This document shows positions 9,877 through 57,480 of a stretch of 64,000 nucleotides of DNA, piece by piece. Each line of letters begins with the position of its first letter. Position 1 is the first letter of the stretch. A program made the position numbers and the translations under genes. Location: NCBI GenBank assembly GCA_002269645.1, contig NIVC01001172.1, positions 66,507 to 130,506 on the forward strand, in the 5' to 3' direction. The notes beneath the pieces are model-generated. The model did no database searches. It saw only the letters and a list, made by a program, of their open reading frames with translations, and had not been told where the DNA came from. This stretch comes from Macrostomum lignano (taxonomy: Eukaryota).

Positions 9877-10024
9877 ATGATTAAAAGTCAGTCAACTCAT
9901 CAGGCCTCGGCTGTGGGCTCCGTGCCGGTTGTAGTCAAGTGCACCAGGTTCGACGCGGCTCAGGCGGTTCACTGGATCCCGGCGTGTGACAGCGGCGACT
10001 CATTCTCATCAGACTCGGATTCTG
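9877..10024 (+). CDS. Candidate first coding exon of the RasGAP gene (MIKSQSTHQASAVG...DSDS)
   Basis: ATG-initiated GC-rich ORF ending at a strong donor TCTG|GTGAGT in phase 1, compatible with the phase-1 acceptors at 13967 and 32235. No homology was recognised. Confidence 0.4.
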
Positions 10025-10029
10025 GTGAG

Positions 10030-16485: not shown

Positions 16486-17134
16486 TTTTGTATTTTTCGT
16501 TTTTAAGCTGAGAGGAAATAAAAGAAAATATCTATTAAAATTTTAGCAGTCGGTGTTGACAGTTTATTAATATTAACAAAAATACAATATAAAAATTCAC
16601 CCAATCTGAAGCAGACATTTTTTTAATCTGACCATTTTTGTCCATATGCAGTTTCTAAAAAGCATTCTCTAGAAGTATAGAAACCCATGTGTAGCCCTAA
16701 TCCCCCTGACTAATACCCATATCAGGGCAAAGGGGGTTGTGCTTGTAGTCAGAGCGGAACAGAGCGAATGAATTGAGTGTGAGAGACAGGCAGAGGGGGT
16801 TTAAGCCCGGCTTCGTTGGCACACGGAACAGGTGGGGGATCGGCTCTCTCCCGTTCTCCCAGTTCCCCTCTCCTCCTCTCCTTTTCATCCCCATACCGAC
16901 CGACTTCCTTTCACTTCAGGTTTTTCATGTCGAACTGATTCCGGGCGCGGTTCTGAGCCACCTACACCCGTTAAAAGCAGATCTTAGCCGATTCTTTTTC
17001 GAAATGAACCCCGACCCCTGATCACCGATCTGCGCTTAAAACCGAAGCCCCAGCTTCCCTTGTAAGAAATCTTCGCACATTTCGCAAATTGTTTTTCTGA
17101 TACTGTTTTTGGGAATTGCTTTCGCTCGCATGAC

Positions 17135-18865
17135 CTCCCTCTCATTGTCTCCCTCTCATTGTCTCCCTCTCATTGTCTCCCTCTCATTGTCTCCCTCTCA
17201 TTGTCTCCCTCTCATTGTCTCCCTCTCATTGTCTCCCTCTCATTGTCTCCCTCTCATTGTCTCCCTCTCATTGTCTCCCTCTCATTGTCTCCCTATCATT
17301 GTCTCCCTCTCATTGTCTCCCTCTCATTGTCTCCCTCTCATTGTCTCCCTCTCATTGTCTCCCTCTCATTGTCTCCCTCTCAATGTCTCCCTCTCATTGT
17401 CTTGTTCTCAGTATCTCCCTCTTATTGTCTCCCTCTCCCAGTGTTTCCCTCTCTCAGTGTTTCCCTCGTTCAGTGCCTCAATCTCTCAGTGTCTCCCTCT
17501 CAGTATCTCCCTCCCTCTCATTGTCTCCCTCTCATTGTCTCTCTCTCTCAGTGTTTCCCTCGCTCATTGTCTCACTCTCTCAGTATCTCCCTCTCATTGT
17601 ATCCCTCTCATTGTCTCCCTCTCATTGTCTCTCTCTCTCAGTGTTTCCCTCGCTCATTGTCTCACTCTCTCAGTATCTCCCTCTCATTGTCTCCCTCTCA
17701 TTGTCTCCCCTCTCATTGTCTCCCCTCTCAGTATCTCCCTCTCATTGTCTCCCCTCTCATTGTCTCTCCTCTCATTGTCTCCCCTCTCATTGTCTCCCCT
17801 CTCATTGTCTCCCCTCTCATTGTCTCCCCTCTCATTGTCTCCCCTCTCATTGTCTCCCCTCTCATTGTCTCCCCTCTCATTGTCTCCCTCTCATTGTCGC
17901 CCTCTCATTGTCTCCCTCTCATTGTCTCCCTCTCATTGTCTCCCTCTCATTGTCTCCCTCTCATTGTCTCCCTCTCATTGTCTCCCTCTCATTGTCTCCC
18001 TCTCATTGTCTCCCTCTCATTGTCTCCCACTCATTGTCTCCCTCTCATTGTCTCCCTCTCATTGTCTCCCTCTCATTGTCTCCCTCTCATTGTCTCCCTC
18101 TCAATGTCTCCCTCTCATTGTCTTGTTCTCAGTATCTCCCTCTTATTGTCTCCCTCTCCCAGTGTTTCCCTCTCTCAGTGTTTCCCTCGTTCAGTGCCTC
18201 AATCTCTCAGTGTCTCCCTCTCAGTATCTCCCTCCCTCTCATTGTCTCCCTCTCATTGTCTCTCTCTCTCAGTGTTTCCCTCGCTCATTGTCTCACTCTC
18301 TCAGTATCTCCCTCTCATTGTATCCCTCTCATTGTCTCCCTCTCATTGTCTCTCTCTCTCAGTGTTTCCCTCGCTCATTGTCTCACTCTCTCAGTATCTC
18401 CCTCTCATTGTCTCCCTCTCATTGTCTCCCCTCTCATTGTCTCCCCTCTCAGTATCTCCCTCTCATTGTCTCCCCTCTCAATGTCTCCCTCTCATTGTCT
18501 TGTTCTCAGTATCTCCCTCTTATTGTCTCCCTCTCCCAGTGTTTCCCTCTCTCAGTGTTTCCCTCGTTCAGTGCCTCAATCTCTCAGTGTCTCCCTCTCA
18601 GTATCTCCCTCCCTCTCATTGTCTCCCTCTCATTGTCTCTCTCTCTCAGTGTTTCCCTCGCTCATTGTCTCACTCTCTCAGTATCTCCCTCTCATTGTAT
18701 CCCTCTCACTGTCTCCCCTCTTATTATCTCCACTCTCATTGTCTCCCCCTCTCATTGTCTCCCCTCTCATTGTCTCCCCTCTCATTGTCTCCCCTCTCAT
18801 TGTCTCCCCTCTCATTGTCTCCCCCTTTCATTGTCTCCTGTCTCACTGTCTCCTTCTCATTGTAA
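17135..18865. repeat. Pyrimidine satellite (TCTCATTGTCTCCC / TCTCAGTGTCTCCC, 14-15 bp) with higher-order blocks
   Basis: Tandem array; the diagnostic block CAATGTCTCCCTCTCATTGTCTTGTTCTCAG recurs at about 17381, 18102 and 18479. Confidence 0.97.
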
Positions 18866-19544
18866 TTAATCTGCTTATTCACATTGAGTGTCACTCAGAA
18901 CTTTCCCGGCAGACCCTACCCCAGAGTAGAGCAGGTAAATTGAAATAATTCATGCCCATCTGAGACAGCTCTCAAGTCCTAGTCGGGCAGGAGAGCTCAG
19001 ATGAGTAGCAGATGTATCACAGCTACTCTGCCCTATTTGCAGATGATCTCCGGGTGAGAGCCAAGGCAGTCCCGATCCCCTTCCTTCCTTAGAATTTCAT
19101 CCAACTCGTCTCAATTTGGGTCCGCGGCAGTCCACTTGAGTGCTCAAGCTGAGGCTGGGAGGACATGAGACGTGCCAAATAGGAGGGGTAGAGGGGTACC
19201 TCACCGGATTCCCAGGGCAATAGGGGGAGGGAAATCCCGCTTCTCTGACTGAAGTTCAGCGGCCAGGTAACTCACTTCACTAAACTAAAAGCAGAGCGAA
19301 ACCTGCTTCTGGGGTGAGTCATGCTTGCCCGACCGAGGGTTGGCGGCAGAACTGCATTTCCTCCACCATTTTCTGTCACGCCTGCAGTCTTCCCTGCCTC
19401 AGCGATTCTTGCATTCTTATCGACTTGGCTGGCTAACCATTGTCTCACCTTGGTTAGGTAGGCTGCGCTCTATAGTTGCAAATTTTCATGATTGAGCTGT
19501 GGGCTGGGGATGTAGCGATTGAAGATTGAGTGTGAGACAAGGAG

Positions 19545-22500
19545 AGAGGGGAGACACTGAGGGGAAGACACTGAGGGGGACACTCTGAGGGGGAGACACT
19601 GAGGGGGAGACACTGAGGGGGAGACACTGAGTGGGAGGCACTGAGTGGGAGACACTGAGTGGGAGACACTGAGTGGGAGACACTGAGTGGGAGACACAGA
19701 AAGAGGGAGACACTGAGAGAGAGGGAGACACTGAGAGAGAGAGAGAGAGACACTGAGAGACGCTGAGAGGAGAGGGAGACACTGAGAGAGAAAGAGACAC
19801 TGAGAGAGAGAGAGACACTGAGAGAGAAAGAGACACTGAGAGAGGGGGAGACACTGAAAGGAGAGGGAGACACTGAGAGAGAGAGACACTGAGAGAGAGA
19901 GACACTGAGAGAGAGAGAGAGAGACACTGAGAGACGCTGAGAGGAGAGGGAGACACTGAGAGAGAAAGAGACACTGAGAGAGAAAGAGACACTGAGAGAG
20001 AGAGAGACACTGAGAGAGAAAGAGACACTGAGAGAGAAAGAGACACTGAGAGAGAGGGAGACACTGAGAGAGAGGGAGACACTGAGAGAGAGGGAGACAC
20101 TGAGAGAGAGAGAGACACTGAGAGGGAGAGAGAGACACTGAGAGAGAGAGAGAGACACTGAGAGACGCTGAGAGGAGAGGGAGACACTGAGAGAGAGAGA
20201 GAGACACTGAGAGAGAAAGAGACACTGAGAGAGATGGAGACACTGAGATAGAGGGAGACACTGAGAGAGAGGGAGACACTGAGAGAGAGAGAGACACTGA
20301 GAGAGAACGAGACACTGAGAGAGAGGGAGACACTGAGAGGAGAGGGAGACACTGAGAGAGAAAGAGACACTGAGAGAGAAAGAGACACTGAGAGAGAGGG
20401 AGACACTGAGAGAGAGGGAGACACTGAGAGAGAGGGAGACACTGAGAGAGAGGGAGACACTGAGAGAGAGAGAGACACTGAGAGAGAAAGAGACACTGAG
20501 AGAGAGAGAGAGACACTGAGAGAGAGAGAGAGACACTGAGAGAGAGGGAGACACTGAGAGAGAGGGAGACACTGAGAGGAGAGGGAGACACTGAGAGAGA
20601 GAGAGACACTGAGAGAGAAAGAGACACTGAGAGAGAAAGAGACACTGAGAGAGAAAGAGACACTGAGAGAGAGAGAGAGAGACACTGAGAGAGAGAGAGA
20701 GACACTGAGAGAGAGAGAGAGACACTGAGAGACGCTGAGAGGAGAGGGAGACACTGAGAGAGAGAGAGAGACACTGAGAGAGAAAGAGACACTGAGAGAG
20801 ATGGAGACACTGAGAGAGAGGGAGACACTGAGAGGAGAGGGAGACACTGAGAGGAGAGGGAGACACTGAGAGAGAGGGAGACACTGAGAGGAGAGGGAGA
20901 CACTGAGAGGAGAGGGAGACACTGAGAGGAGAGGGAGACACTGAGAGGAGAGGGTGACAATGAGAGAGGGGGAGACACTGAGAGAGAGGGAGACACTGAG
21001 AGAGAGAGAGGAAGACACTGAGAGAGAGGAAGACACTGAGAGAGAAGGAGACACTGAGGGGGAGACACTGAGACAGGGAGACACTTAGAGAGGGACACAC
21101 TGAGAGAGATGGAGACACTGAGAGGAGAGGGAGACACTGAGAGGAGAGGGAGACACTGAGAGGAGAGGGAGATACTGAGAGGAGAGGGAGACACTGAGAG
21201 GAGAGGGAGACACTGAGAGGAGAGGGAGAAACTGAGAGAGAGGGAGACACTGAGAGAGGGGGAGACACTGAGAGAGGGGGAGACACTGAGAGGAGAGGGA
21301 GACACTGAGAGGGAGAGAGAGACACTGAGAGAGAGAGAGAGAGACACTGAGAGACGCTGAGAGGAGAGGGAGACACTGAGAGAGAGAGAGAGACACTGAG
21401 AGAGAAAGAGACACTGAGAGAGATGGAGACACTGAGAGAGAGGGAGACACTGAGAGAGAGGGAGACACTGAGAGAGAGAGAGAGAGAGAGACACTGAGAG
21501 ACGCTGAGAGGAGAGGGAGACACTGAGAGAGAAAGAGACACTGAGAGAGAGAGAGACACTGAGAGAGAAAGAGACACTGAGAGAGGGGAGACACTGAAAG
21601 GAGAGGGAGACACTGAGAGAGAGAGAGACACTGAGAGAGAGAAAGACACTGAGAGAGAGAGAGAGAGACACTGAGAGACGCTGAGAGGAGAGGGAGACAC
21701 TGAGAGAGAAAGAGACACTGAGAGAGAAAGAGACACTGAGAGAGAGAGAGACACTGAGAGAGAAAGAGACACTGAGAGAGAAAGAGACACTGAGAGAGAG
21801 GGAGACACTGAGAGAGAGGGAGACACTGAGAGAGAGGGAGACACTGAGAGAGAGAGAGACACTGAGAGGGAGAGAGAGAGACACTGAGAGACGCTGAGAG
21901 GAGAGGGAGACACTGAGAGAGAGAGAGAGAGACACTGAGAGAGAAAGAGACACTGAGAGAGATGGAGACACTGAGAGAGAGGGAGACACTGAGAGAGAGG
22001 GAGACACTGAGAGAGAGAGAGAGAGACACTGAGAGACGCTGAGAGGAGAGGGAGACACTGAGAGAGAAAGAGACACTGAGAGAGAGAGAGACACTGAGAG
22101 AGAAAGAGACACTGAGAGAGGGGGAGACACTGAAAGGAGAGGGAGACACTGAGAGAGAGAGACACTGAGAGAGAGAGAGACACTGAGAGAGAGAGAGAGA
22201 CACTGAGAGACGCTGAGAGGAGAGGGAGACACTGAGAGAGAAAGAGACACTGAGAGAGAAAGAGACACTGAGAGAGAAAGAGACACTGAGAGAGAAAGAG
22301 ACACTGAGAGAGAAAGAGACACTGAGAGAGAGGGAGACACTGAGAGAGAGGGAGACACTGAGAGAGAGGGAGACACTGAGAGAGAGAGAGACACTGAGAG
22401 GGAGAGAGAGACACTGAGAGAGAGAGAGAGAGAGACACTGAGAGACGCTGAGAGGAGAGGGAGACACTGAGAGAGAGAGAGAGACACTGAGAGAGAAAGA

Positions 22501-23802
22501 GACACTGAGAGAGATGGAGACACTGAGATAGAGGGAGACACTGAGAGAGAGGGAGACACTGAGAGAGAGAGAGACACTGAGAGAGAACGAGACACTGAGA
22601 GAGAGGGAGACACTGAGAGGAGAGGGAGACACTGAGAGAGAGAGAGACACTGAGAGAGAAAGAGACACTGAGAGAGAAAGAGACACTGAGAGAGAGGGAG
22701 ACACTGAGAGAGAGGGAGACACTGAGAGAGAGGGAGACACTGAGAGAGAGGGAGACACTGAGAGAGAGAGAGACACTGAGAGAGAAAGAGACACTGAGAG
22801 AGAAAGAGACACTGAGAGAGAGAGAGAGACACTGAGAGAGAGAGAGAGACACTGAGAGAGAGGGAGACACTGAGAGAGAGGGAGACACTGAGAGGAGAGG
22901 GAGACACTGAGAGAGAGAGAGACACTGAGAGAGAAAGAGACACTGAGAGAGAAAGAGACACTGAGAGAGAAAGAGACACTGAGAGAGAGAGAGAGAGACA
23001 CTGAGAGAGAGAGAGAGACACTGAGAGAGAGAGAGAGACACTGAGAGACGCTGAGAGGAGAGGGAGACACTGAGAGAGAGAGAGAGACACTGAGAGAGAA
23101 AGAGACACTGAGAGAGATGGAGACACTGAGAGAGAGGGAGACACTGAGAGGAGAGGGAGACACTGAGAGGAGAGGGAGACACTGAGAGAGAGGGAGACAC
23201 TGAGAGGAGAGGGAGACACTGAGAGGAGAGGGAGACACTGAGAGGAGAGGGAGACACTGAGAGGAGAGGGTGACACTGAGAGAGGGGGAGACACTGAGAG
23301 AGAGGGAGACACTGAGAGAGAGAGAGGAAGACACTGAGAGAGAGGAAGACACTGAGAGAGAAGGAGACACTGAGGGGGAGACACTGAGACAGGGAGACAC
23401 TGAGAGGAGAGGGAGACACTGAGAGGAGAGGGAGACACTGAGAGGAGAGGGTGACACTGAGAGAGGGGGAGACACTGAGAGAGAGGGAGACACTGAGAGA
23501 GAGAGAGGAAGACACTGAGAGAGAGGAAGACACTGAGAGAGAAGGAGACACTGAGGGGGAGACACTGAGACAGGGAGACACTTAGAGAGGGACACACTGA
23601 GAGAGATGGAGACACTGAGAGGAGAGGGAGACACTGAGAGGAGAGGGAGACACTGAGAGGAGAGGGAGATACTGAGAGGAGAGGGAGACACTGAGAGGAG
23701 AGGGAGACACTGAGAGGAGAGGGAGAAACTGAGAGAGAGGGAGACACTGAGAGAGGGGGAGACACTGAGAGAGGGGGAGACACTGAGAGGAGAGGGAGAC
23801 AA
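19545..23802. repeat. 4.2-kb purine satellite (GGGAGACACTGAGAGA-type) with higher-order duplication
   Basis: Tandem array whose unit is the reverse complement of a unit in 17135-18865. Rare variants recur at about 2.3-2.5 kb spacing. Confidence 0.98.
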
Positions 23803-24367
23803 GATAGGAAGGGTACAAGATGATCAATTAAAATTGCAAAGTAAAACTAGCCAAAATACTTGAATGCAATGAAAAGTCAGACATGTAATATAGAGGCCTA
23901 TAAACTATCCTGTACAAATGTTGAGCTCAGAGACCCCCAGACAGCCAGTCTCTCTTGTCTAGCGCGCGTTCTGACAAAACAAACCGCGCCATGCCAGTTT
24001 AAGACGGGAAATGCTTTGTGTCCTCGCGCGGCCACTAGCAGCTCGGGCTCGACTTTGTTGGCCCTAAGCAAACAGACCAGAGTTTCAGACTGCGCCCATA
24101 CCAATGCCTGGGCTGCAGTGCAGCACTGCAACGCCTCCTGTGCCTGCTGCGGGCCGTGCATGATCTGGGGGCATTGCTGCGAGATGCTTTCAAGTTCTCA
24201 GTTGCTGCCCCCAACATGGCCGAACGAATCTGCAATAGATGTGCTGTTAAATGAGACTGACTGGGATGGGGGCACACAGAAACTCGGGAAAATATTGATT
24301 GATTATTGACTGAAATTATAAAAGTGAAAATCGATAATCCATTCATATGGCCAGCAAGGAATCGGAG

Positions 24368-25833
24368 GGGAGGCAGAGAAGGAGGCAGAGAAGAAGGCAG
24401 AGAAGGAGGCAAGAGAAGGAGGCAGAGAAGGAGGCAGAGAAGGAGGTAGAGAAGGAGGCAGAGAAGGAGGCAGAGAAGGAGGCAGAGAAGGGGGCAGAGA
24501 AGGAGGCAGAGAAGGGGGCAGAGAAGGAGGCAGAGAAGGGTGCAGAGAAGGAGGCAGAGAAGGAGGCAGAGAAGGAGGCAGAGAAGGAGGCAGAGGAGGC
24601 AGAGAAGGAGGCAGAGAAGAAGGCAGAGAAGGAGGCAGAGAAGGAGGCAGAGAAGGCAGAGGAGGCAGAGAAGGAGGCAGAGAAGGAGGCAGAGAAGGAG
24701 GCAGAGAAGGAGGCAGAGAAGAAGGCGGAGAAGAAGGCGGAGAAGAAGGCAGAGAAGGAGGCAGAGAAGGAGGCAGAGAAGGAGGCAGAGAAGGAGGCAG
24801 AGAAGGAAACAGAGAAGGAGGCAGAGAAGGAGGCAGAGAAGGAGGCAGAGAAGGAGGCAGAGAAGGAGGCAGAGGAGGCAGAGAAGGAGGCAGAGAAGGA
24901 GGCAGAGAAGGAGGCAGAGGAGGCAGAGAAGGAGGCAGAGGAGGCAGAGAAGGAGGCAGTGGAGGCAGAGAAGGAGGCAGAGGAGGCAGAGAAGGAGGCA
25001 GAGGAGGCAGAGAAGGAGGCAGAGAAGGAGGCAGAGAAGGAGGCAGAGAAGGAGGCAGAGAAGGAGGCAGAGGAGGCAGAGAAGGAGGCAGAGGAGGCAG
25101 AGAAGGAGGCAGAGAAGGAGGCAGAGAAGGAGGCAGAGGAGGCAGAGAAGGAGGCAGAGGAGGCAGAGAAGGAGGCAGTGGAGGCATAGAAGGAGGCAGA
25201 GGAGGCAGAGAAGGAGGCAGAGAAGGAGGCAGAGAAGGAGGCAGAGAAGGAGGCAGAGAAGGAGGCAGAGAAGGAGGCAGAAGAGGCAGAGAAGGAGGCA
25301 GAGGAGGCAGAGAAGGAGGCAGAGAAGGAGGCAGAGAAGGAGGCAGAGAAGGAGGCAGAGAAGGAGGCAGAGAAGGAGGCAGAGAAGGAGGCAGAGAAGG
25401 AGGCAGAGAAGGAGGCAGAGAAGGAGGCAGAGAAGGAGGCAGAGAAGGAGGCAGAGAAGGAGGCAGAGAAGGAGGCAGAGGAGGCAGAGAAGGAGGCAGA
25501 GGAGGCAGAGAAGGAGGCAGAAGAGGCAGAGAAGCAGGCAGAGGAGGCAGAGAAGGAGGCAGAGGAGGCAGAGAAGGAGGCAGAGGAGGCAGAGAAGGAG
25601 GTAGAGGAGGCAGAGAAGGAGGTAGAGGAGGCAGAGAAGGAGGTAGAGGAGGCAGAGAAGGAGGCAGAGGAGGCAGAGAAGGAGGCAGAAGAGGCAGAGA
25701 AGCAGGCAGAGGAGGCAGAGAAGGAGGCAGAGGAGGCAGAGAAGGAGGTAGAGGAGGCAGAGAAGGAGGTAGAGGAGGCAGAGAAGGAGGCAGAGGAGGC
25801 AGAGAAGGAGACAGAGAAAGCAGAGGAGGCAGA
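24368..25833. repeat. Purine minisatellite of mixed 12-bp (GCAGAGAAGGAG) and 9-bp (GCAGAGGAG) units
   Basis: Tandem array seen directly. Confidence 0.97.
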
Positions 25834-26369
25834 GGGGGGAGGGAAAAGTGTAGCTGGCAGCATTGCAGTTCTCTTTATGCATATTGATGAAGCAGCCGCT
25901 CCTTGCTGGGCCAGTCAAGGCCCATCGATTGTCGGCCACTTTATTGTTTTGAGTCGGAGAACTAATTTCCAATTCGCTTAGCAGCTCTCGATGAGCTGTG
26001 CTAGAAAATTAATTACTAAAGCATCTTTACTCAGTTTCACAGGAACAAATATCAGAGGAACTGGCTTTGATTAATGAAAGTTGAGAGCAAGGCTTGAAGA
26101 CAATTAAGTTCAAGACGAAAAAGTCCATTGCTACTTTTGTTAAAATGAACTTTCTTTTCAAAATCATCACACGAGTGTTTACCCTCTAGCTATAAATTTC
26201 ATCGAAAATAAGGAAGAAAATCTTCAAACGCTACTTGAAGTAGAACATTTCTACGAGTACTTAACTTATAGCAGTTGGTTTGGTGCAGTTTTTTATTAGA
26301 AAGTTGAATGCAATTTTCATCCAGAAACACAACTTATCTTGTACCATTTAAAAATATTGAAAGTTATGC

Positions 26370-39200: not shown

Positions 39201-41124
39201 ATTCAGCGGTGTTTTATTTAAATTCAAATTGGATTTTAGGTCGAATTGAACTGAAAAAAATCAATATGAGGGTGTAGAAAGTTAGAGGGAGTTAAGAAAT
39301 GTCTACCATGGCTGGATTGAGTTTCAATGGATAACCAATGTACATTGTATAAGACTTAGAAGAGGGGCAGAGAGAAAAAGCAAGAGATAAAAAGTTCTAG
39401 CATGGCAGGCTTGAGTGGCGATCGATAACCAATGTACATTGGATAAGACTTGGAAGAGGGGCAGAGAGAAAAAGCGAGAGATGGAAAAGTTCTAGCATGA
39501 CTGGCTTGTGGGGCGATCGATAATTTTAACCAATTTACGTTTTATAAGACTTGGAAGAAGGACAGAGAGAAAATGGGGGGACAGATAGCAATTTTGCAAC
39601 AAAGATTAAAAGTACATGTACTTTTCGCCGTTCACTTTAGGTGGACGCCCCGGACACCCTAGCAGCCAATCAGCGCCGACTTCGAGAATTCGTCGACCTG
39701 TTCTGGACTCGTGTGCAGGCCTCGGCTCCGGCCGTACCGCCCGAGATCGGCCGCCTGTTCGCGCTGATCCGCCAGCGCCTCGCTGAGTCCCGACGCCCCG
39801 AGCTCGGCGACACCCTGGTCAGCGCCAGCCTGTTCCTGCGCCTGCTCTGCCCCGCCATCCTCGGCCCGACCCTATTCGGCCTCACCCAGGAGCTGCCGAG
39901 CCAGCGGGCCGCGCGTTCCCTCACCCTCATCGCCAAGACAATCCAGAATCTCGCCAATGGTACCCTGTACGGCGCCAAAGAGGCCTACATGCAATTCATG
40001 AACAGGTTCCTGGAGGAGCGCACCACCGAGATGCGGCTGTTCCTCAAGGCGGCGTCGAGGCCCAGTCAGCTTCCCGACGCTCCGCCCGGCATTGATCTGG
40101 GCTGCGAGCTCGCCCAGCTGCACCTGCTGCTCAGCGCCACCTGCTCAGACCAGCAGCAGCAGCAGCTTCAGGAGCCCTGTTTGGCAGCTCTTTCCAGCCA
40201 CTTGGCCACCCTGACCCACTGCCTGCGACACGGTGGCTACCTTGCACCTGCAGCAACTCCAGGATCTTCGTCTTTAACAGCGGCAACAGTCCAACAAGAC
40301 GACGACGACGACTGGGTGTACAGCAACGTTGCGGAGCCTTCGCCGCCACCGCAGCCGCATCAGCAGCTGCCGCTGCAGCAGCAGCAGCCACCGCAGGCCA
40401 GGCGGCATCAAGAAAACTTGAATTATCAGCACTATCCAGCCGCGCCAAGCTACCAGCAGCAGCAGAGGCAGCACAGCACCCAGGAGGACTGGAAGAAGAT
40501 GCTAGAAGAGGCCAACAGTTTCGCTACTGCAACCAGCGTCCCAGCCGGTCAGCCGGCCAGCGGCTCCGGCGGCGTCGCCGGCTGCGCGGCGTCTGGCGCG
40601 GCGGCCTCGACAACCGGCAGCAGCGGCTACCAGAGCTTCGCCGCCGCCTCCCCGGTGCAGTTCTTCAACCCCACCTATCAGAAGGGCTGCCTGCCGCCTC
40701 TCTACTCCCAGTCGCGCCGCAGCTCCGACAGCTCCGAGGTCGACAACGACGACAGACAGCGCCGGCTGGCCGACGACGACTACGAGGGCGGCGAGGAGGA
40801 CGACGACGAGGACCCGCTGGACAGCCCGCCGAGGGAGCGGCGCCTCGGCGGCCGAGGCAGCTCCTCCTCCGAGATGGCCAGTTCAGAGGCGTCCTCGCTG
40901 GGCCGGTCGCAGCGTCATCAGTTTGCGCCGCAGCGTCGCGAGGTCGCCTCGCAGGCGTCGCAGGCGGCCGCCAGCAAAGTTCGGCCCCCCGTTGGCTGGC
41001 CCTCGCCGTCAGACGCCGAGGCGATGCGGCTGAAGACCCGGTCGCTGGGCCCGGGAGCCGGCCTGGACTTCAACAACTTTGGAGTCGGAGGCGCTGGTGG
41101 AGGCAGCGACGATTCGCTGATGTT

Positions 41125-41158
<34 letters not shown>

Positions 41159-42042
41159 GTTCGAATGGGACTAAGGTGAGGCTTGAGACTCGAGTCATTG
41201 ATCCATGGATCGGTTAAATGAATGGCTGATACGTTCGGTATGTTATTAATAGGGTGATAGGTTAAATAGATCGATAGACCGAAAAAGCAATTGGTTGAGA
41301 GATTGATAAAATGATAGAATGATACAATGACTTTTTATTAGAGGCAGGGGCTGTGTGCACCTGAGCAGGCACACAAGCGCGCGGATACGTACGCAGTCAC
41401 ACGCACAGGCACACACTCACACAGGAGTGTACAGCGGCCCTAACTTTATTTATCGTTGGACATGTACACTTCACTGTGCCTTGGGGGTTGACCCTCAAGA
41501 GCGTTAGTTGCACGAGGATGCAGAGCCAAGCCGAGACTCCAGTTTAGCCCCAAATTAATGAGACTGCACTGGGAATCGAACCTGGGCCGCTGCTAGAGCA
41601 CTGGGCTACGCCACTGGGCTACGTTATGACTAATTGATAGAAGGCAGGTGGGCAGATGAAGAACTAAGACTCCGAAACCCTGAAAAACCACAGAGCCACC
41701 CAGGGCCAGTCGCAGCAGCACCACCGGAGCAGCCAGCAGCAGCTGCAGCAGCAGCCGTCTCCAGGCTATGACAACGAGTTGCAGAAATTGCAGCGCGAGT
41801 TAGAAGAGACCCGTCAACGTCTCCAGGCCACGGAGGCCCGGTTGCGCTCCAATGAGCAGGAGAAGGTGCAGCTGATTGCCCAGTTTGAGAGCCGACAGCA
41901 GCAGCAGCAGCAACCTGGAAGCAACTCTTCAACGCCAAACTCCGCCAACCAGCAGCAGATGATGGAGATCCTGGAGCGTTTGCAGAGTCTGGAGAGCACC
42001 ATCACGGCCGGCAGGCGGCAGAATGCAACCGATTCGATCTAA
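32235..42042 (+). CDS. SynGAP/DAB2IP/RASAL2-family Ras GTPase-activating protein (C2, RasGAP and C-terminal coiled coil); about 1205 aa from the shared exons
   Basis: Phase-consistent GT-AG exons: 32235-32392, 33123-33385, 33958-34344, 36228-36335, 37620-37721, 37819-37923, 38490-39099, 39641-41175, 41694-42042 (TAA). Family motifs: [53 protein letters not shown] (C2), [23 protein letters not shown] (arginine finger), [12 protein letters not shown], and [16 protein letters not shown] (coiled coil). Confidence 0.93.
33515..33850. repeat. (TAGAA)n pentanucleotide microsatellite in a RasGAP intron
   Basis: Seen directly. Confidence 0.99.
34350..35068. repeat. 17-bp minisatellite (CAGCTCTGATCTCATCT), about 42 copies
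   Basis: Begins within 6 nt of the donor at 34345. Confidence 0.98.
35617..36193. repeat. 21-bp minisatellite (GGAGATCTGAATCTCACTGTA)
   Basis: Ends about 35 nt before the acceptor at 36227. Confidence 0.96.
37965..38425. repeat. Purine minisatellite (GAATGGGAATGGGAA) in a RasGAP intron
   Basis: Seen directly. Confidence 0.95.
41320..41625 (-). mobile_element. tRNA-derived SINE-like element in a RasGAP intron
   Basis: The minus strand has an A-box-like TAGCCCAGTGG (tandemly duplicated) and a B-box GGTTCGATTCCC. The body is shared with 58078-58150, and the tail is CTCTAATAAAAAG-TCATT-like. Confidence 0.6.
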
Positions 42043-46864: not shown

Positions 46865-49307
46865 TCACGCGGAAGCCGGCGGCCGGACAAGCGACTCGGC
46901 GGCACCATCGGCCTGCATCTCTAATTCTGTTTGGCAGTTTGCCGGCGTCTTTTTGCCGCTACTCGATCTGAGCCTGTCGGCCAGACTGTAGAACAGCTCG
47001 AATATCTCGCAGACAGTCAGCAGGCTGCAGCCGATGTACAGTCCCAGTAGGCCGCCTGTGTCCGCCAGGAAGGCGGTGAACGAATAGGAGCGAGAGATGA
47101 CCACCTGCGGCGAGACTGTGCTACTCGGCGCAATGGTGACGCTGACCATTGACTCGGCAATGTAGGACCGGAACACGCCTTCCAGGTGGGCCGGATGCTC
47201 ACCTGCTTGCCGCGAGAGTGACGAGCTGCTCAATATTGAGTAGAAACTCTTTGTTAGAGCAAGAGCTCAAAATTGATATGAACAAAAGATTTTTTTGCAA
47301 AGAGTTTGCCTGTCATTTGACTGCCTGTAATTTGACTGCCTGTAATTTGACTGCCTGTAATTTGACTGCCTGTCATTTGACTGTCTGTCATTTGACTGTC
47401 TGTCATTTGACTGCCTGTCATTTGACTGCCTGTCATTTGACTGTCTGTCATTTGACTGTCTGTCATTTGACTGCCTGTCATTTGACTGCCTGTCATTTGA
47501 CTGTCTGTCATTTGACTGTCTGTCATTTGACTGCCTGTAATTTGACTGCCTGTAATTTGACTGCCTGTAATTTGACTGCCTGTAATTTGACTGCCTGTCA
47601 TTTGACTGTCTGTCATTTGACTGCCTGTAATTTGACTGCCTGTAATTTGACTGCCTGTAATTTGACTGCCTGTCATTTGACTGCCTGTAATTTGACTGCC
47701 TGTAATTTGACTGCCTGTCATTTGACTGCCTGTAATTTGACTGCCTGTCATTTGACTGCCTGTAATTTGACTGCCTGCCCTTCCGAGAATATAAGCCTGG
47801 CTTGCTTCATTCCTATGCGGATATCCAGAAAGTGAGCAGAAAGAGTGAAAGACAGTTCTTCATGCAGACCGCCAGCTGTACACTCACCGCTGTCCAACTG
47901 CTTGGCAATTTTGATCAGCTCTGCAATAGCCGGCGCCAGGTGCTCACTGTCGTTGAACAGCGGCATTCTGGCGAAGTAGCTCACTGCCGAGCTGCCAACG
48001 CTGGGCCAGGTGGCGAACGAGAAGGACGCGCTGTACTCCGGGTGCTGGCAGGGCTGGGACAGCCGGCAGATTCGCTTCACATCGGCTTCGATCTGCTTCC
48101 AGTCGATTGGCTTGTTCTTCAGGGCCTGTATGCTCCGCTTGCTGGATTCGGACATGTTGAAGCAGCGCTTGGCGTGCCGCATGCTCCAGATGATGGGGTA
48201 GTGAGAGAACACGCAGTCCAGCTCTTGTAGCAGCTGCTTGGTCATCTCGTGATAGTAACAGGCCGCGTAGCTGTAGGTGAAGTTCACTTTCTCGTCTGTC
48301 AAGTAGTCCTTGAAGTTGACATTCGGATTGTTCACCGAGCAGTTGGTGCCGTGCAGATCGTGGCTGAAAAAGTTCTCCTCCATCTCGAGACTGACGGTGT
48401 AGGACTTGCCAGGCGCCAGCAGGAAGCTGGTCTCGTGATCGAACGACGGATAGGTGCCGTTCTGCACTATCAGCATAGTGAAGCCGGAGCTCTTGAGCTT
48501 CTCGATGCCGACGGTGGGGTGCCAGTCCTGGTAAAGAATCTCCTCACCAGAGTCGGGGTCAACCATGGGCTTGATGTGGTGCCCGGAGTAGGAGAAGTCC
48601 TTGAAGTACGGATCCGCCGACAGCTGAACCTCCAGCTTGTACATCTTGGTCTCCATCTGATGCCGCTGCTCCTCGGTCAGGACGAGCTTGAAGCAGATGA
48701 GGTTCTCTGGATGGCTGAACTCCTCCACTGCCACGCTGAAGGTCTCGTGCAGGGAGGAGATGTTGCACCGCAGGATGGATTGAGACTTGCGATGCGTCAG
48801 GTACTTGGTGATGAGGTCCACCGGTAGCGAGTTCTGGATGAACGAGGCCCGCGACTTCAGGCTCATGTGCATCTCACCGCTCGAGTTGCCGAAAACATCG
48901 TCGTAGAGTTTTCCGAGCCGTCTGATCTCCTGGTTCACCTGGCGGGCCTCCTCGGTGCTCAGGACGAACGGGAAGCTGCCCGAGTACGGGTTAATTGGGC
49001 AAAAGTACAAGTCGGGAAAAACGAACGGAACCTTGTCCAACTCGTACGACTTGCTGATTTTGTTCTCGCTGAGCCGCCTGACCAAAGTGCTGGCGTTGTT
49101 GAAGAACAGGCCGAGGAACACCAGGAACAGCAGCAGCCACATGGCCCGCATCGGGGTGCTGTGTGACGCTGCCGCCCGGCTGATGCCGTGGGCGGTGCTG
49201 CCGGCCAGAATGGTGAGCACTGTGCCGCTAAGGGCGGCGGTAGTTCGGCTGTTGCACAACTTGGCTGGGCAGCAGCCGCAGCAATCGTGCTTCTCATTGC
49301 TGCAAGC
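46865..49307 (-). CDS. DEG/ENaC (amiloride-sensitive sodium channel/ASIC superfamily) subunit, about 590 aa; first codon not resolved
   Basis: Exons 49307-47888 and 47205 (or 47202)-46865, with a phase-1 junction. Motifs: pre-TM1 STAHG, TM1 MWLLLFLVFLGLFF, FPDLYFCPINP, cysteine-containing thumb, and TM2 YSFTAFLADTGGLLGLYIGCSLLTVCE with the GxS selectivity filter. Confidence 0.93.
47305..47778. repeat. 15-bp minisatellite (ACTGCCTGTAATTTG) in the DEG/ENaC intron
   Basis: Seen directly. Confidence 0.97.
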
Positions 49308-52271
49308 CTGAAAATATGTTTTATATGCATGCGTGAGCTGAAAATATTATAATAATAATAATTATTATTATTATTATATTATTTTCTGACAGTGAAGGAA
49401 TTAGTAGCTTAAAACCTGTATCAGAAATAATTGAATAATTGAATAATTATAAGTATAATAATTATAACAAAGTAATAACTATTATTACTTTACTTTATTG
49501 TAATTATAATAAATATTTAACAATATTATTTACACTAATGAAATATTGAAATATTGTAATAATGTGCATTCTTTTACTTTAAATGAAATAAACCACATCA
49601 TTTCAAGAGAGACTGATTAAATTACCAATTTTGACACAATTTTGTTAAATTATGCGTTTAAAATATATATCAGCAGACTCTACATGTATTTTTATAAGGT
49701 TAAAAATGGGATTAATAAAGTTATGCTTTAGTCTATTATTATTTATTTGTAAAAATATAAATATAAAACATAGGCATTCAATCTAAAGGTTACTTTTTAC
49801 ATCTGGTCAGCAATAGAAAAGTGTAAAGTGGAAATGCAAAATTTGCCTGTTTCTATCAAGTAAATAATATATTTACATGTATAACAAACAATCCAAACAT
49901 GAAGCAGTTGTTTGAAGCCATTATTTGACAAAAAACCATTTCAATCAAATACTAGTTAATTAGCAAAATAATTGAGTTACAAAACTTAGGATGCTAGTTA
50001 TTAAAGTACTATTGAAATAGAATATATTTGGAAAGGAGCTGTTTGTACTCATGAAAAGTTTTTAATATCACTAATTCTCACGGTGGGCTAGGAGAGTTTT
50101 TTTTAGAAACATTGCACGTGTGATTTTGAAAATGTTCGAATTTATTTTCGTAATATTTTATAGCCGACATTTCATAAACTATAACAAAGCGGTATAAATT
50201 TGAGTATCTGTACGAGATAAGCATCTTATGACAAGATTTATAATGAGTTTAAGTATACATATAAAATAGATACATGAAATCACATCAGCAAATAAAAACC
50301 TGAACATTCATTCGCACTTCAAGCACGAATTCTCAAACAACGTATAAAATTACATGCATTAAAACTTGTGTTCATTATCTAAGCCAGTTTATTTTGCGAA
50401 TGAATTTTTAACATCAGGAACATATGAGAATTTATAAGTTAAGAGTTCGATGTGTTTCACCCCTCATGTTGATGTAGATGTAGATGTTGATTAGAGAGTG
50501 CAGACTTAACCTGACGAGAAAATTCGTTTTTAGAAATGTTTTGGAGACTTGGTTAACGCAAAAAGTACACTATAGAGATAAGAACTTCTCATTTTTGGAA
50601 CGGAAATAGCGATAGTTTTCTTTTGGATGCAGATCTAAAGCTCATATTTTAGTACACTCGTAGAAATATACCCTGCTTTATTGATTTTTAAAGCTTTTTC
50701 TGCAAAAGTTAAACTCACGACGCCACTCCTCCGTTGGAGGAGAAATGCCATTCCCAAAACTCTACCCGGATTTCCCCGGGAACTGCATCTCAGGAACTCC
50801 GGAAGCTATTAAAATCGCAAAATATTATCAAACCACAGCCCAGTAATCCTAGTCATAACCTTAAAGCCAACCCTTCCATTAATTATAGTTATCCAACGCA
50901 GAGAGTTATCAAAAAAATCTCGACAACTATACACGATTTAGTTAATTCCAGCCGACCAATAGCTTCAAACGCCACCCTAACTTTCTCTGTCAATGCGAAC
51001 AATATTTTACATGTACAGTACAGTCGAAACATTTTGCGATAAGAAGATTACTGGATTTCAAGCGTTGAAAAAATGCTTTTAACGAATTTTTCATCTGAAT
51101 CTGTGTGACAAGTACTAGCGCTTTTCAGCGCCGCAAAAAGCCGCAGGTACTGCATGCCAATTATTGACAGTACATGTAAATTTAAAGAATACGATAAAGA
51201 TTATGAATCAAGAAGCACATTCGCGCGTTAGCTACTGTCAGTTTATTAGGCTAAATATACATGTGAAGCATTTTAATGCCATGTATGTATTTTAGATACC
51301 CCCCCCCAGCTGAACCCCTCCGAGCGCGTTTTTTCACACCAAAACCACCAACCAACCAATTTTTATTGCCTTCCTAGCCCGGTGTTCCAGCCTAAAGCTG
51401 CCTGCTATGTACACTTGCAGTAGCGCTGGCCTAATGTACATATCATTATTACGGCTGCACCAATAGCAGTAGGCTGTTTACGTCTGCAAGTCACCTTAAA
51501 TGCCTTCATTTTTATAAAATAGCTTACGCATTCTTTCTTACTACTACTTAACTAAAAGTAGGAAAACAGTTTTACCAAGCAAATATAGCTAAAGGGCCCT
51601 AGTGTTTATGTGTGATCAAGACCAAGATAAAAATTCAACTTTTCAGCCACTAAGGTGGATTCACAGACTTCATCAAGATTAACCAATGTCTGCAATATGG
51701 ATCAGCTCAAACTTTAAGAAAATCTTCAAGGAAATTTACCGGTATTGACTGGAATTTGGAAGGCCAATAAAATGAAGCAAAAACAAAAGCAAATTGCTAT
51801 TCAAATTATTTTAAAGGTTAAATGGCACAAGCAGAAATTCATTAATGCTTTTACTGTATATTTGACAGCAATAAAGAGAATCGCGTTGCTACCACGACAC
51901 AGAGAAACAGCCAGAGTTAATTTTCGACCGCTTACAAAAATGCATGCGTGCGCCAATCAGAATCACACACATTTATATATTTGAGCTACTAATAGTAGGG
52001 GGCAAAGAAAACTAATAAGAAAAATCACCGTTAAAAGATTTGGTGAAAATCAAAACCAGAGTACATCTGACTCTTTGTGCGAATCTGCGAACTGGGAATT
52101 CAATCAGACTATGGGATTATAATGAAATTGGTTTATTTGCTAAAAACGCAACTGTTGAAAAATATGATAATCTAATCAAAAACACAATTACCATAATTAT
52201 ACGCATACAAAATGGAGAGTCTGACAAGTGCACTATGTATTAATATAGTCTGCATTAGAAACAGTTCGTAT

Positions 52272-54474
52272 TCAAAGCGGCTTCCTAGCCTTGAACAGGC
52301 CCCAACGCTGGCAGCCCCGGTCCACTCGTCCGATTTTGGCGCCCCAACCGTCCAGGATGTACTGGTACATCTGTTCGCCAACATCCTGGTGAAATTCGGT
52401 TTCGGGGAATGCTTTCATTAAAACAGGCAGCAGCATTTAACAGTTGAATGGAGTGACCTTGAATCACGCGAGTTTGAATGACGTGACCTTGAATCAAGTG
52501 AGTTAGAATCGTGTGACCTTGAATCACGTGACCTCGAATCACGTGACCTTGAATCAAGCAAGTTTGAATGACGTGACTTTGAATCACGTGACTTTGAATC
52601 ACGTGACCTTGAATCACACAAGTTTGAATCACGTGACCTTGGATCAAGTGAGTTAGAATCGTGTGACCTTGAATCACGCGACTTTGAACCACGTGACCTA
52701 GAATCACGCAAGTTTGAATGACATTACCTTGAATCAAGTGAGTTAGAATCGTGTGACCTTGAATCACGTGACTTTGAATCACGTGATCTTGAATCACGCA
52801 AGTTTGAATGGCGTGACCTTAAGTCACGTAACTTAATCACTTTAACCTTTGTACTTTAAGAGCCTCTTACATGCAGCTAGGATTGGGAGGGACTATTTGC
52901 AACGAGGATGGGGTTGATTGCTAGAATCATGACGCACCAACGTGCATTGGCCTCTCACCTTAAGAAACTGCTCGCGCAGTCCCACCACCCGGGACTGCTC
53001 GTCGACCAGGGCTCGGCGAAACCGGTCGGTGAAGTCGATAGCTTCGACATCAGTGAAACCGACGCTTGACAGGACGGCGCCGTACTCCGGCACGGTCAGC
53101 AGGTGGTAGCCTCGCTGCTTCACGTAGGCCGCGTAATCGTCTGGCCAGGGCTTCTCACCGCAGCAGTAGTCCGTGACCAGCAGCTGGCCGCCCGGCTTCA
53201 GCCAGCGCAGGCAGCGCTGATACAGAGTGGCCTTGTCGGCGATGTGCAGGATGGTGTCCCGGCTGTACACCAGGTCGAATGAGGCCTCTGGATAGTCCAC
53301 GGTGGTGCAGTCGGCCAGGACGAGGCGGACTTGATCTTCGCGCAGGCCTTCTGGAAAGTAGATTAGCAATCCATTCCATTCCTTAATGAACCATGTTGGC
53401 TAGATTAGCAATCCATTCCATTCCTTAATGAACCATGTTGGCTAGATTAGCAATCCATTCTATTCCTTAATGAATGATGTTGGCTAGATTAGCAATCCAT
53501 TCTATTCCTTAATGAATAATGTTGGGTAGATTAGCAATCCATTCTATTCCTTAATGAATAATGTTGGGTAGATTAGCAATCCATTCTATTCCTTAATGAA
53601 TAATGTTGGCTAGATTAGCAATCCATTCTATTCCTTAATGAATAATGCTGGGTAGATTAGCAATCCATTCTATTCCTTAATGAATGATGTTGGCTAGATT
53701 AGCAATCCATTCTATTCCTTAATGAATAATGTTGGCTAGATTAGCAATCCATTTTATTCCTTAACGAATAATATTGGCTAGATTAGCAATCCATTTTATT
53801 CCTTAATGAATAATGTTGACTAGATTAGCAATCCATTTTATTCCTTAATGAATAATGTTGGCTAGATTAGCAATCCATTCTATTCCTTAATGAATAATGT
53901 TGGGTAGATTAGCAATCCATTCTATTCCTTAATGAATAATGTTGGCTAGATTAGCAATCCATTCTATTCCTTAATGAACCATGTTGGCTAGATTAGCAAT
54001 CCATTCTATTCCTTAATGAACCATGTTGGCTAGATTAGCAATCCATTCTATTCCTTAATGAATAATGTTGGCTAGATTAGCAATCCACTTACGCATCTTT
54101 AGTTCCTCAGAAAGGCACTAGACTAGCAATCCACTCTAATCCCTCCACAATCGAGGCTCACCCTTCTCAACCTGCTCCTTGAGCCGCTCCATGCCGATGT
54201 CCAGCATATTCTTGGACAAGTCGATGGCCTCGACTCGGCAGCCGTACTTTCTTGCCAGATAGAAGGCGCTACCGCCGATGCCGCAGCCGATGTCCAGCAC
54301 GGAGCTGTCGGGCCTCAGACTCAGCGCCGAGCACAGATCATTAGTGGTGTCCTCTCCGCCAGTGCTAACGTAGGTGTGACCGAAGATCTTCTCGTAGCTC
54401 AGAATGCCGATTCGAGAATATTGGACATTGTCCAGGAACTCTTGAAATGTAGCGTAGCCGTGATAGTCTGTCAT
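52272..54474 (-). CDS. PMT: Phosphoethanolamine N-methyltransferase, single SAM-dependent domain, 272 aa
   Basis: Exons 54474-54162, 53350-52959, 52385-52272 (TGA), joined in phases 1 and 0. Motifs: FQEFLDNVQY, YEKIFGHTYVSTGG, VLDIGCGIGG, IDLSKNM, YSRDTILH, LKPGGQLLVTDY, KQRGY, GWGAK and QRWGLFKARK all match the C-terminal domain of plant PEAMT, nematode PMT-2 and Plasmodium PfPMT. Confidence 0.93.
52445..52832. repeat. 15-bp minisatellite (TTGAATCACGTGACC) in PMT intron 2
   Basis: Seen directly; many copies carry CACGTG. Confidence 0.94.
53359..54090. repeat. 42-bp tandem array filling PMT intron 1, about 17 copies
   Basis: Period-42 unit GATTAGCAATCCATTCTATTCCTTAATGAATAATGTTGGCTA. Confidence 0.98.
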
Positions 54475-55711
54475 AGCGATCCCGGTGGCTAATTAATTAT
54501 CTGTGCTGTTGTTGCCTGTTCTGTAAATCGTGCGCCAATGAAACTTCTCTTCACTCCAAATGCTTTTATTACGCGGTTTAAAAGCCCGAGTGGCGTGGAG
54601 GGAGGGGTACAGAGATTATAGCTACGAATGGAAATGAGTAATTTTCCATTGCATTCAGAATTACACAGGCTGCATTTGCACTGGCATTGGCTGGCGTGGC
54701 GTGTGTTGGGTGGCGGCCGAGGACCACTAGAGACCCAAAGCTATCTGGAGTGGAAACTACCAATAAAGAGTTAGTCAATTGGAAAATATGAAAAGCACTC
54801 TGAACCTCTGACAAGTTAGCATGATTTCCAATCCAAATACTTGGTTTTTTTTTCAGAACTCCTTGAACTGTAGGTATTTCTATACATAGCATATAAGCTA
54901 TAGATTAATTCAAAATCAAAAAACAAATTGAAGCTTCCAATCCAGATGTTTGCTCTGTAGTAGTTCTTGAATTTTATTGTACTTTATTACGTCTTGCCCT
55001 ACACCTGACAGCTTATTAATTTAAGTAGAGTCAGCTATGCGCTTCGGACAATTCGGTCAAAGATTTCCACTCCAGAATAACAATTTGTACTCCTTGAACG
55101 TAGGCGCTCTTTTCCTTGGACTGACTGCTTAGTTTGTGCTTAAAACCCGGTTAAAACCCACACTAGGGGGGATTTTCTCGTAGCAAAATTAAACTTCTCT
55201 CTCTACCCCCTCCATGATATTCCATAGTCCGGAAATCTTCCTGCACACTGATTAACACTAACAGCATGCGGTGCCTATTGAAGACTTGAGTGGCAATGTT
55301 CAGTCAGTGCCGCAGTCATATATTATCTTACACGTGTAAGCTAGACTAGTGTCAGAAAACCGGTTTGAACCGGCGCATGCCAAATCTATAACTGGAATTG
55401 TAAACGCTACCAAATAGCTTTGAGATAACAATAGATTTATAGCAGCATGTAAAGCTTACCAGAACCCGTGTAATAAAGCATGACTCAGCAATTTTATTTT
55501 ATCTTATTTACGCAAAATTTACATGCAAATCATTCTCAATAAGGAGAGTTCAACTCAATAGAAACACTAAAAGGAACACAGTTGATGCAATTTCAGATTG
55601 CATTGTACCACAAAATTAAGAATTAACAAGCTATAAGCATACAAAGTACCTACTTACTACTTACTATAAGTATTCAACACAATTTTAGATTTTACAGCGT
55701 GAAAATTCGAA

Positions 55712-55899
55712 TCAAACGATATGTATCGATATTCGAATTAAACTTTATGTATCAATATTTGAATTAACCGATACGTATCGATATTCGAATTAAACGATAT
55801 GTATCGATATTTAAATTAACCAATATATATCGATATTTGAATTAACCAATATGTATCGATATTAAAATTAAACGAGTATTAGAATTAAACGATCTATTA
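55712..55899. repeat. AT-rich minisatellite of about 26 bp (TATCGATATTCGAATTAAACGATATG)
   Basis: Tandem copies; a further copy resumes at about 56177-56220, after the SINE. Confidence 0.85.
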
Positions 55900-56185
55900 G
55901 GGGCTGTAGCCTAGTGGTTAGAGCGTCGGACTCACAACTTGAAGGTCGGGGGTTCGATTCCCGATTCCACCGGAACAATTTGTGTTATTGAGCAAGACAC
56001 TTAACTCTGCATTGCTTCAGTTCACCCAGCTGTAAAATGGGTGCCAGCATCAGCTGTACTAATTGAGGATGTGTGTGGCGACCCCCCCTCCCCAGCCCTT
56101 GGACTGAACAGCCGTACGCAGCCTTGAGATGCGCCGTGCAATAGCTGCGGCTGAGCTGTCGGTTGCACAACCTGGCCAAAACGAT
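55900..56185 (+). mobile_element. tRNA-derived SINE with a CORE central domain
   Basis: A box TAGCCTAGTGG (55907) and B box GGTTCGATTCC (55951). Then TGTGTTATTGAGCAAGACACTTAACTCTGCATTGCTTCAGTTCACCCAGCTGTAAAATGGG (55981-56041) aligns by eye with the MIR/CORE consensus (TTGGGCAAGTCACTTAACCTCTCTGAGCCTCAGTTTCCTCATCTGTAAAATGGG). The acceptor stem is not intact, so this is not a tRNA gene. Confidence 0.85.
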
Positions 56186-56689: not shown

Positions 56690-57480
56690 AGATAAAGTGA
56701 GGGAGAGGGCAGATGGACTGAGGGTAGATAGAGCGAGGGAGATAAGGGGTAGATAGAGTGAGGGAGAGGGCAGATGGAGTGAGGGTAGATGGAGTGAGGG
56801 CAGATGGACTGAGGGCAGATGGACTGAGGGCAGATGGAGTGAGGGCAGATGGACTGAGGGCAGATGGAGTGAGGGCAGATGGAGTGAGGGCAGATGGAGT
56901 GAGGGCAGATGGAGTGAGGGCAGATGGAGTGAGGGCAGATGGAGTGAGGGCAGATGGAGTGAGGGCAGATGGAGTGAGGGCAGATGGAGTGAGGGCAGAT
57001 GGACTGAGGGCAGATGGACTGAGGGCAGATGGACTGAGGGCAGATGGACTGAGGGCAGATGGAGTGAGGGAGAGGGAGGTAGATAGACTGAGGGAGAGGG
57101 AGGTAGATAGATTGAGGGAGAGAAAGTAGATAGAGTGAGGGACAGGGGGTAGATAGACTGAGGGAGAGGGGGTAGATAGAGCGAGGGACAGGGGGTAGAT
57201 AGAGTGACCAAGAGAGTAGATAGATCGGGAGGAAGAGAGGGTAGATAGAGCGAAGGAAATGGGGTAGATAGAGTGACCAAGAGAGTAGATAGATCGGGAT
57301 GAAGAGAGGGTAGATAGAGCGAGGGAAATGGGGTAGATAGAGTGACCAAGAGAGTAGATAGATCGGGAGGAAGAGAGGGTAGATAGAGCGAGGGAGACGG
57401 CAGATACGGGAGACGATAGCTAAGGGAGAGGTTAGATAAGGGAGGGCAGATAAGGGAGGGCAAGAGTGGATGCAGATGGA
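56690..57480. repeat. Purine minisatellites (GAGGGCAGATGGAGT, 15 bp, and longer variants)
   Basis: Seen directly. Confidence 0.95.

Follow-up and report, generated by a model that had tools for sequence, protein, structure and literature searches.

A stand-alone, Plasmodium-sized phosphoethanolamine methyltransferase in the flatworm Macrostomum lignano and its counterparts in other animals

A 64,000-nt stretch of contig NIVC01001172.1 of the Macrostomum lignano assembly GCA_002269645.1 (contig positions 66,507 to 130,506; the whole stretch is hereafter called the window) carries on its minus strand a gene for a phosphoethanolamine methyltransferase (PMT). M. lignano is a free-living flatworm (Platyhelminthes, Macrostomorpha). 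The gene encodes a 272-aa protein that is a stand-alone PMT domain, Plasmodium-sized and with a complete set of active-site residues. A first-pass annotation of the window, made from the letters alone, had interpreted the gene as a single-domain PMT and regarded this architecture as exceptional for an animal. That interpretation was right on the identity of the gene and wrong on its rarity; the product is an uncharacterised member of a known enzyme family, and its single-domain form is common among aquatic invertebrates.

A monopartite methyltransferase with a complete active site

Pfam profiles recognize the protein only as a generic class I methyltransferase (Methyltransf_11 and Methyltransf_25, E about 1e-21). 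Among solved structures, the best match paired residues 9-270 with residues 236-490 of 5wp5, the C-terminal domain of Arabidopsis PMT2 (AtPMT2; E 4.9e-85), followed by 5wp4, the C-terminal domain of Arabidopsis PMT1 (E 1.5e-82). A whole-length match to the Plasmodium enzyme, PfPMT, was also obtained (residues 11-270 against 11-265 of 3uj6, E 8e-60), and nematode PMT-2 matched more weakly than AtPMT2 and PfPMT (E 4e-49). End-to-end alignments of residues 9-270 to AtPMT2 236-490 and to PfPMT 11-265 had E values of 1.6e-75 and 9e-60. Outside the structure set, Xenopus PMT matched at E 1.9e-94. Homology of the M. lignano protein to PMTs is far above chance, and the product is almost certainly a monopartite member of the PMT family (PMT/PEAMT, EC 2.1.1.103). 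By alignment, its domain is assigned to the MT2 type, the counterpart of the C-terminal domain of two-domain enzymes and of the whole Plasmodium enzyme.

Established structural work on PfPMT has assigned catalytic roles to Tyr19, His132 and Asp128 and has defined a set of phosphate-binding residues. When the M. lignano protein was aligned to PfPMT, all 17 PfPMT residues examined in the S-adenosylmethionine (SAM) site, the catalytic group and the phosphobase site were identical or conservatively replaced (I36V, I86L, I111C), which agrees with the earlier claim that the catalytic and phosphobase-binding set is complete. Paired residues of the SAM site (PfPMT/M. lignano) are D61/D61, G63/G63, D85/D85 and D110/D118, with motif I present. 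In the catalytic group, Y19 is paired with Y19 and R127-D128-H132 with R135-D136-H140; the phosphate-binding pairs are Y27/Y27, Y160/Y166, Y175/Y180, R179/R184, Y181/Y186 and K247/K252. Eleven of these positions (Y19, Y27, D61, D85, D118, R135, D136, H140, Y180, Y186 and K252) are invariant over 42 single-domain homologues.

The N-terminal methyltransferase domain (N-domain) of two-domain PMTs was sought by tblastn with seven queries taken from gastropod, rotifer, fish, frog, annelid and plant enzymes. None was found in the whole window, including the 1.8 kb before the neighboring gene SDHAF4, and the only hits were weak cross-matches to the Rossmann core of the PMT gene itself; for this 1.8 kb, the first-pass annotation had likewise reported no first methyltransferase domain. 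The same result, again with weak own-core cross-matches only, was obtained for the 10-kb upstream flanks of two other copies of the gene in the M. lignano genome.

Three GT-AG exons on the minus strand yield a coding sequence (CDS) of 819 nt, encoding the complete 272-aa open reading frame (ORF) that had been predicted. Its parts and immediate surroundings are as follows.

54495-54493, minus strand: in-frame TAA, 7 codons 5' of the ATG; kept in three of three M. lignano copies
54490-54489, minus strand: AG dinucleotide (TTAG), 14 nt 5' of the ATG; possible acceptor for cis-splicing or for spliced-leader trans-splicing
54474-54162, minus strand: PMT exon 1, 313 nt, with the ATG at 54474-54472; residues 1-104 and the first base of codon 105; holds FLDNVQY (Y19) and Y27 in the N-terminal lid, and SAM motif I (VLDIGCGIGG)
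53351-54161, minus strand: PMT intron 1, phase 1, GT..AG; nearly all 42-bp tandem array
53350-52959, minus strand: PMT exon 2, 392 nt; residues 105-235; holds D118, R135-D136-H140, TDY (Y166) and Y180/R184/Y186
52386-52958, minus strand: PMT intron 2, phase 0, GT..AG; position common to five other animal PMT genes
52385-52272, minus strand: PMT exon 3, 114 nt with the TGA at 52274-52272; residues 236-272; holds GWGAK (K252) and QRWGLF
52132-52137, minus strand: AATAAA, candidate polyadenylation signal by sequence match only, 135 nt past the stop

The upstream TAA lies where it had been reported, in frame and 7 codons before the ATG. The array in intron 1 (53359-54087) comprises 17.4 copies of a 42-bp unit at 96% match, and that in intron 2 (52453-52840), which likewise makes up most of its intron, has a 15/30/90-bp unit with CACGTG cores.

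The gene is intact, and it is already modeled and correctly named in public databases. Positions 42272-64000 of the window match the end of contig NIVC01001172.1 at 100%, and the CDS annotated on that contig has the same coordinates as the three-exon model derived here. The product is 100% identical to M. lignano PAA71323.1 and PAA78210.1 (BOX15_Mlig015119g9 and g4), and UniRef already names the M. lignano protein phosphoethanolamine N-methyltransferase. Annotation of this genome came from a genome-guided RNA-seq transcriptome in which trans-splice and poly(A) reads fixed the gene ends (PMC5730564); the 272-aa model is therefore transcript-based rather than ab initio. The assembly holds at least three intact copies, that is, two more on other contigs, and the RNA-seq-based models are 272 aa at all three loci. 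One of these copies has a CDS identical to that of the window, and the other (Mlig025765.g3, here L003) differs by 4 synonymous and 2 non-synonymous substitutions, too few to estimate dN/dS between the paralogues. Gene spans are 2203, 2161 and 1626 bp, with intron array lengths that vary among copies. The order Piezo-Skp1-SDHAF4-PMT-ASC channel is common to all three, and these syntenic copies are in keeping with the partial genome duplication known for the line that was sequenced (PMC5730564). Neither Mlig015119 nor Mlig025765, looked up with regard to trans-splicing status and expression, occurs in the supplementary files of Wudarski 2017 or Grudniewska 2018.

Single-domain PMTs in other animals and their ancestry

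A homology search combined with cluster look-up retrieved 122 proteins, of which 45 are single-domain PMTs. These are 253-289 aa long and start 7-37 residues before the FLD..QY motif. The taxa that carry them include five cnidarians (Actinia, Actinostola, Oculina and Dendronephthya among them), five decapods, one barnacle and the tunicate Oikopleura. Representative lengths are 271 aa in Amphibalanus, 265 in Actinia, 267 in Oculina, 267 in Dendronephthya, 265 in Penaeus, 265 in Homarus, 270 in Macrobrachium and 268 in Oikopleura. At the Actinia, Oikopleura and Amphibalanus loci no N-domain sequence was detected within 10 kb upstream, and a gene on the opposite strand ends 0.1-1 kb upstream of the PMT in each. 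With such forms in Cnidaria, Decapoda, Cirripedia and Tunicata, the notion that the architecture is exceptional for an animal does not hold. In the enzymology literature PMTs are nonetheless still credited to plants, nematodes, some protozoa and frogs alone (PMC2824672, PMC4805780, PMC4357015, PMC10269165). A targeted literature search returned no paper on single-domain PMTs of non-nematode animals; the architecture is documented in databases, not in print.

Other arrangements of the two domains also occur. Ciona intestinalis has a divergently oriented pair of stand-alone genes for N-type (MT1-like) proteins, 218 and 217 aa long (at 3158-6786, minus, and 10001-11861, plus, of locus L011); the ends of both proteins coincide exactly with the inter-domain linker, and within 10 kb there is no C-type gene. 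A model from the barnacle Pollicipes pollicipes (locus L010, 10001-33478) comprises an N-domain followed by no more than the initial ~45 C-domain residues. In two-domain PMTs of bdelloid rotifers (P0092, P0098, P0111), of the gastropod Physella (P0012) and from environmental sequences (P0028, P0044, P0105), motif I of the N-domain, ELGAGIGR, has been replaced by, for example, AIVNDVEH or HFIGNDKC. Judged by this motif, such N-domains are vestigial in the manner of nematode PMT-2, but here in rotifers and a gastropod.

Exon structures were reconstructed exactly for six animal PMT genes (M. lignano, Actinia, Oikopleura, Amphibalanus, Batillaria and Rotaria). All of them, whether single-domain or two-domain, carry the phase-0 intron that lies at M. 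lignano residue 235/236. All six introns of the single-domain Actinia gene are phase 0 and coincide with C-domain introns of the two-domain Rotaria gene. Because intron positions coincide, the C-domains of fused genes belong to one lineage with the single-domain genes. A further phase-0 intron, located in the linker of the two-domain Rotaria and Batillaria genes ~25 residues ahead of the FLD motif, is a natural place for a fusion or fission to have occurred.

The M. lignano protein resembles the other animal single-domain PMTs in architecture, size, identity (48-55%), invariant active-site residues and the intron at 235/236; it differs in a phase-1 intron of its own at residue 104 and in keeping just one ancestral C-domain intron. 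By these comparisons, its gene has lost most ancestral introns while keeping one C-domain intron, and has gained or shifted the phase-1 intron at residue 104. The first-pass annotation had argued from spliceosomal introns that the gene is resident; this stands, and since the phase-0 intron at 235/236 is common to animal genes, the flatworm gene was inherited within animals. Horizontal transfer and contamination were rejected on account of the introns, one of them at a position shared with animals, of the animal neighbors in three syntenic copies and of the animal best matches.

PfPMT (PDB 3uj6) is likewise a single domain (266 versus 272 aa), alignable over its whole length with conserved catalytic and phosphobase residues. 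It is nevertheless only 42% identical to the M. lignano protein, compared with 53-55% for animal homologues, and the latter protein has an 8-residue insertion relative to PfPMT (the EQVEKEGL region). In a neighbor-joining (NJ) tree of 121 sequences PfPMT forms an isolated long branch, so the M. lignano gene is not a Plasmodium-type orthologue or transfer. With 42% identity, an isolated PfPMT branch and an intron at 235/236 shared with animals, the gene falls outside a Plasmodium-type clade. M. lignano itself sits beside the barnacle among the single-domain forms, a pairing with 17% bootstrap; in 28% of replicates it falls within the two-domain sequences. Because this bootstrap support is too weak, the NJ tree does not separate an ancient single-domain lineage from secondary loss of the N-domain.

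Catalytic scope and the gene's 5' end

We propose that a single M. lignano enzyme would use SAM to methylate phosphoethanolamine (pEA) three times in succession, converting it through phosphomonomethylethanolamine (pMME) and phosphodimethylethanolamine (pDME) to phosphocholine. The phosphocholine would enter phosphatidylcholine synthesis by the CDP-choline-dependent route and might also supply the pools of choline and glycine betaine. The enzyme would act alone, as lone MT2-type enzymes do in Plasmodium and Toxocara canis. PfPMT performs all three methylations. T. canis has a PMT2-type enzyme only, which also methylates phosphoethanolamine (PMC10269165). By analogy with these enzymes, the monopartite M. 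lignano PMT probably carries out all three steps; between it and PfPMT, trifunctionality is demonstrated for the latter only.

Two further observations bear on this proposal. A profile built from nine intact N-domains was searched against annotated proteins and gave 153 matches; among the 120 listed, Macrostomum, cnidarians and decapods are not represented, although bacterial relatives of 35-40% identity reached E values of about 1e-45 in the same search. That no Macrostomum N-type protein, and hence no counterpart of PMT-1 of the nematode split pathway, is among the listed matches mildly favors a trifunctional enzyme. The decayed SAM motif I in N-domains of bdelloid rotifers and Physella suggests that the N-domain is dispensable and the C-type domain indispensable.

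Several considerations weigh against the three-step proposal. The MT2-type domains of plants and most nematodes are not efficient at methylating phosphoethanolamine, and the Arabidopsis PMT structures of Lee and Jez reportedly indicate that the plant MT2 domain handles the second and third methylations only. We know of no sequence signature that tells trifunctional from bifunctional MT2 domains. The single-domain animal PMTs are database models only. Stand-alone N-type genes exist in some animals, with two in Ciona, so split pathways are realistic. The lack of an N-type gene in M. lignano is drawn from annotated proteomes and from 120 listed of 153 matches; the listed matches were all at most ~390 aa and did not include the two-domain source proteins of the profile, longer targets having apparently been skipped, so that an absence from the list calls for caution.

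Beside a trifunctional enzyme, the first-pass annotation had offered half of a split pathway, in which the 272-aa enzyme would methylate pMME and pDME only, as plant MT2 domains or nematode PMT-2 do, and a separate MT1-type or unrelated enzyme, encoded elsewhere in the M. lignano genome, would carry out the first step. The M. lignano domain most resembles the MT2 domains at the C-terminus of two-domain enzymes: MT2 domains of Arabidopsis PMT1 and PMT2 and of vertebrate, mollusc and rotifer PEAMTs are 47-54% identical to the M. lignano protein, which differs from them in having no N-terminal MT1 domain. Separate N-type genes of the kind that a split pathway would need are found in Ciona, where the 217- and 218-aa proteins have no C-type partner within 10 kb. 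The Pollicipes model is an N-domain with ~45 C-domain residues, while a stand-alone C-type gene is present in another barnacle. Nematode PMT-2 (4ine, 4krh) offers a further comparison; it shares an active C-terminal MT2-type domain with the M. lignano protein, but the similarity is lower (E 4e-49), and it is about 430-450 aa long with a vestigial N-domain, whereas the M. lignano protein is a bare 272-aa domain. Against a split pathway, the 120 listed N-domain matches contain no protein from Macrostomum, cnidarians or decapods, despite the many annotated cnidarian and decapod genomes, and the lone MT2-type enzymes of Plasmodium and T. canis do perform the first step. We regard a split pathway as unlikely.

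Another alternative is a PMT-fold enzyme for another small phospho- or phosphono-amine, such as 2-aminoethylphosphonate, with no part in phosphocholine synthesis. 2-Aminoethylphosphonate is carried in lipids of marine invertebrates, and the phosphate-binding residues would presumably suit a phosphonate too. Every PfPMT residue that contacts phosphoethanolamine or phosphocholine is conserved, however, and identity to functionally characterized plant PMT domains is ~50%, making a different substrate very improbable.

It is scarcely credible that the model is truncated, with the transcript cis-spliced at the AG at 54490-54489 to unseen upstream exons encoding an N-terminal methyltransferase domain: the AG keeps the frame 14 nt before the ATG, is preceded by pyrimidines (TTAG or CCAG) in a diverged copy as well, and the inter-domain linker of two-domain genes does hold an intron, but that intron is phase 0 and ~25 residues before FLD whereas the AG here is phase 1 and 17 residues before it, no N-domain-like coding sequence occurs over the 9.5 kb that reach upstream as far as the contig end or in 10 kb upstream of the other two copies, the SDHAF4 and Skp1 genes intervene on the same strand, and the RNA-seq-based models at three loci are all 272 aa.

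The first-pass annotation had noted this acceptor as phase 1 at 54489. Both the AG and the phase are as described; the coordinate was off by one base, the AG occupying 54490-54489 such that an exon would begin at 54488. About 30% of M. lignano genes are trans-spliced, and the 35-nt spliced leader has been published (PMC8629364). Joined in silico to this AG, the leader contributes no AUG in the frame of the enzyme. Its own 3' AUG opens, at that junction, a 6-codon upstream ORF (MPPGSL*) that overlaps the PMT start codon. Because the leader has no in-frame AUG, the product would be 272 aa with or without trans-splicing at this site. The TTAG of window positions 54485-54495 reads CCAG in the diverged copy L003 (9975-9985); the pyrimidine-AG is kept while adjacent bases have changed, and the TAA is kept as well. 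In the three sequences compared, this conserved pyrimidine-AG 14 nt before the ATG could be a spliced-leader trans-splice site. Upstream of PMT and on the same strand lie SDHAF4 (56625-56287, minus; 112 aa; Pfam DUF1674, E 1.6e-22) and Skp1. The published criterion lends no support to an operon with SDHAF4, the spacer being ~1.8 kb with only ~0.27 kb of recognizable repeat or tRNA-like sequence.

Whether the M. lignano, cnidarian, crustacean and tunicate proteins would all be self-sufficient trifunctional PMTs is, in our estimate, an even chance. Were they so, a route to phosphocholine by plant-like phosphobase methylation would be widespread among aquatic invertebrates, and the N-domain would be seen in animals at each stage of its loss (intact, vestigial and absent). 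The M. lignano locus by itself matters little: the model is correct, the name is public and the architecture is common in invertebrates. PMTs have been put forward as drug targets specific to parasites, and their occurrence has been described as limited to plants, nematodes and apicomplexans. The sequence data depict a family spread across Metazoa as fused, vestigial-N, N-only and C-only forms, a mildly useful pattern. M. lignano is transgenic and tractable by RNA interference, and would be a convenient animal in which to ask whether an MT2-type domain on its own is enough to make phosphocholine de novo.

Other features of the window

Between SDHAF4 and PMT, and antisense to both, lies a tRNA-like element at 55900-55969 (plus strand) that scores 29.7 bits against the Rfam tRNA model, with a gathering score of 29. 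ARAGORN called no tRNA anywhere in the window, and the element is probably a tRNA pseudogene or tRNA-derived repeat. A 26-bp tandem array at 55705-55875 lies beside it. Directly 5' of SDHAF4, at 56705-57462, 15-bp and 23/69-bp tandem arrays have no in-frame stop and give rise to a spurious ORF of 436 aa that runs into the real 112-aa SDHAF4 CDS.

Four stretches (11381-12894, 17109-18948, 19454-23802 and 24035-25972) are open in two or three frames at once, with ORFs as long as 1437 aa. They carry no meaningful Pfam domain and are probably not genes but repeats, satellite-like or of low complexity. The window also holds a RasGAP fragment at 39641-41179 (plus strand) and an ASC/ENaC channel exon at 47748-49259 (minus strand).

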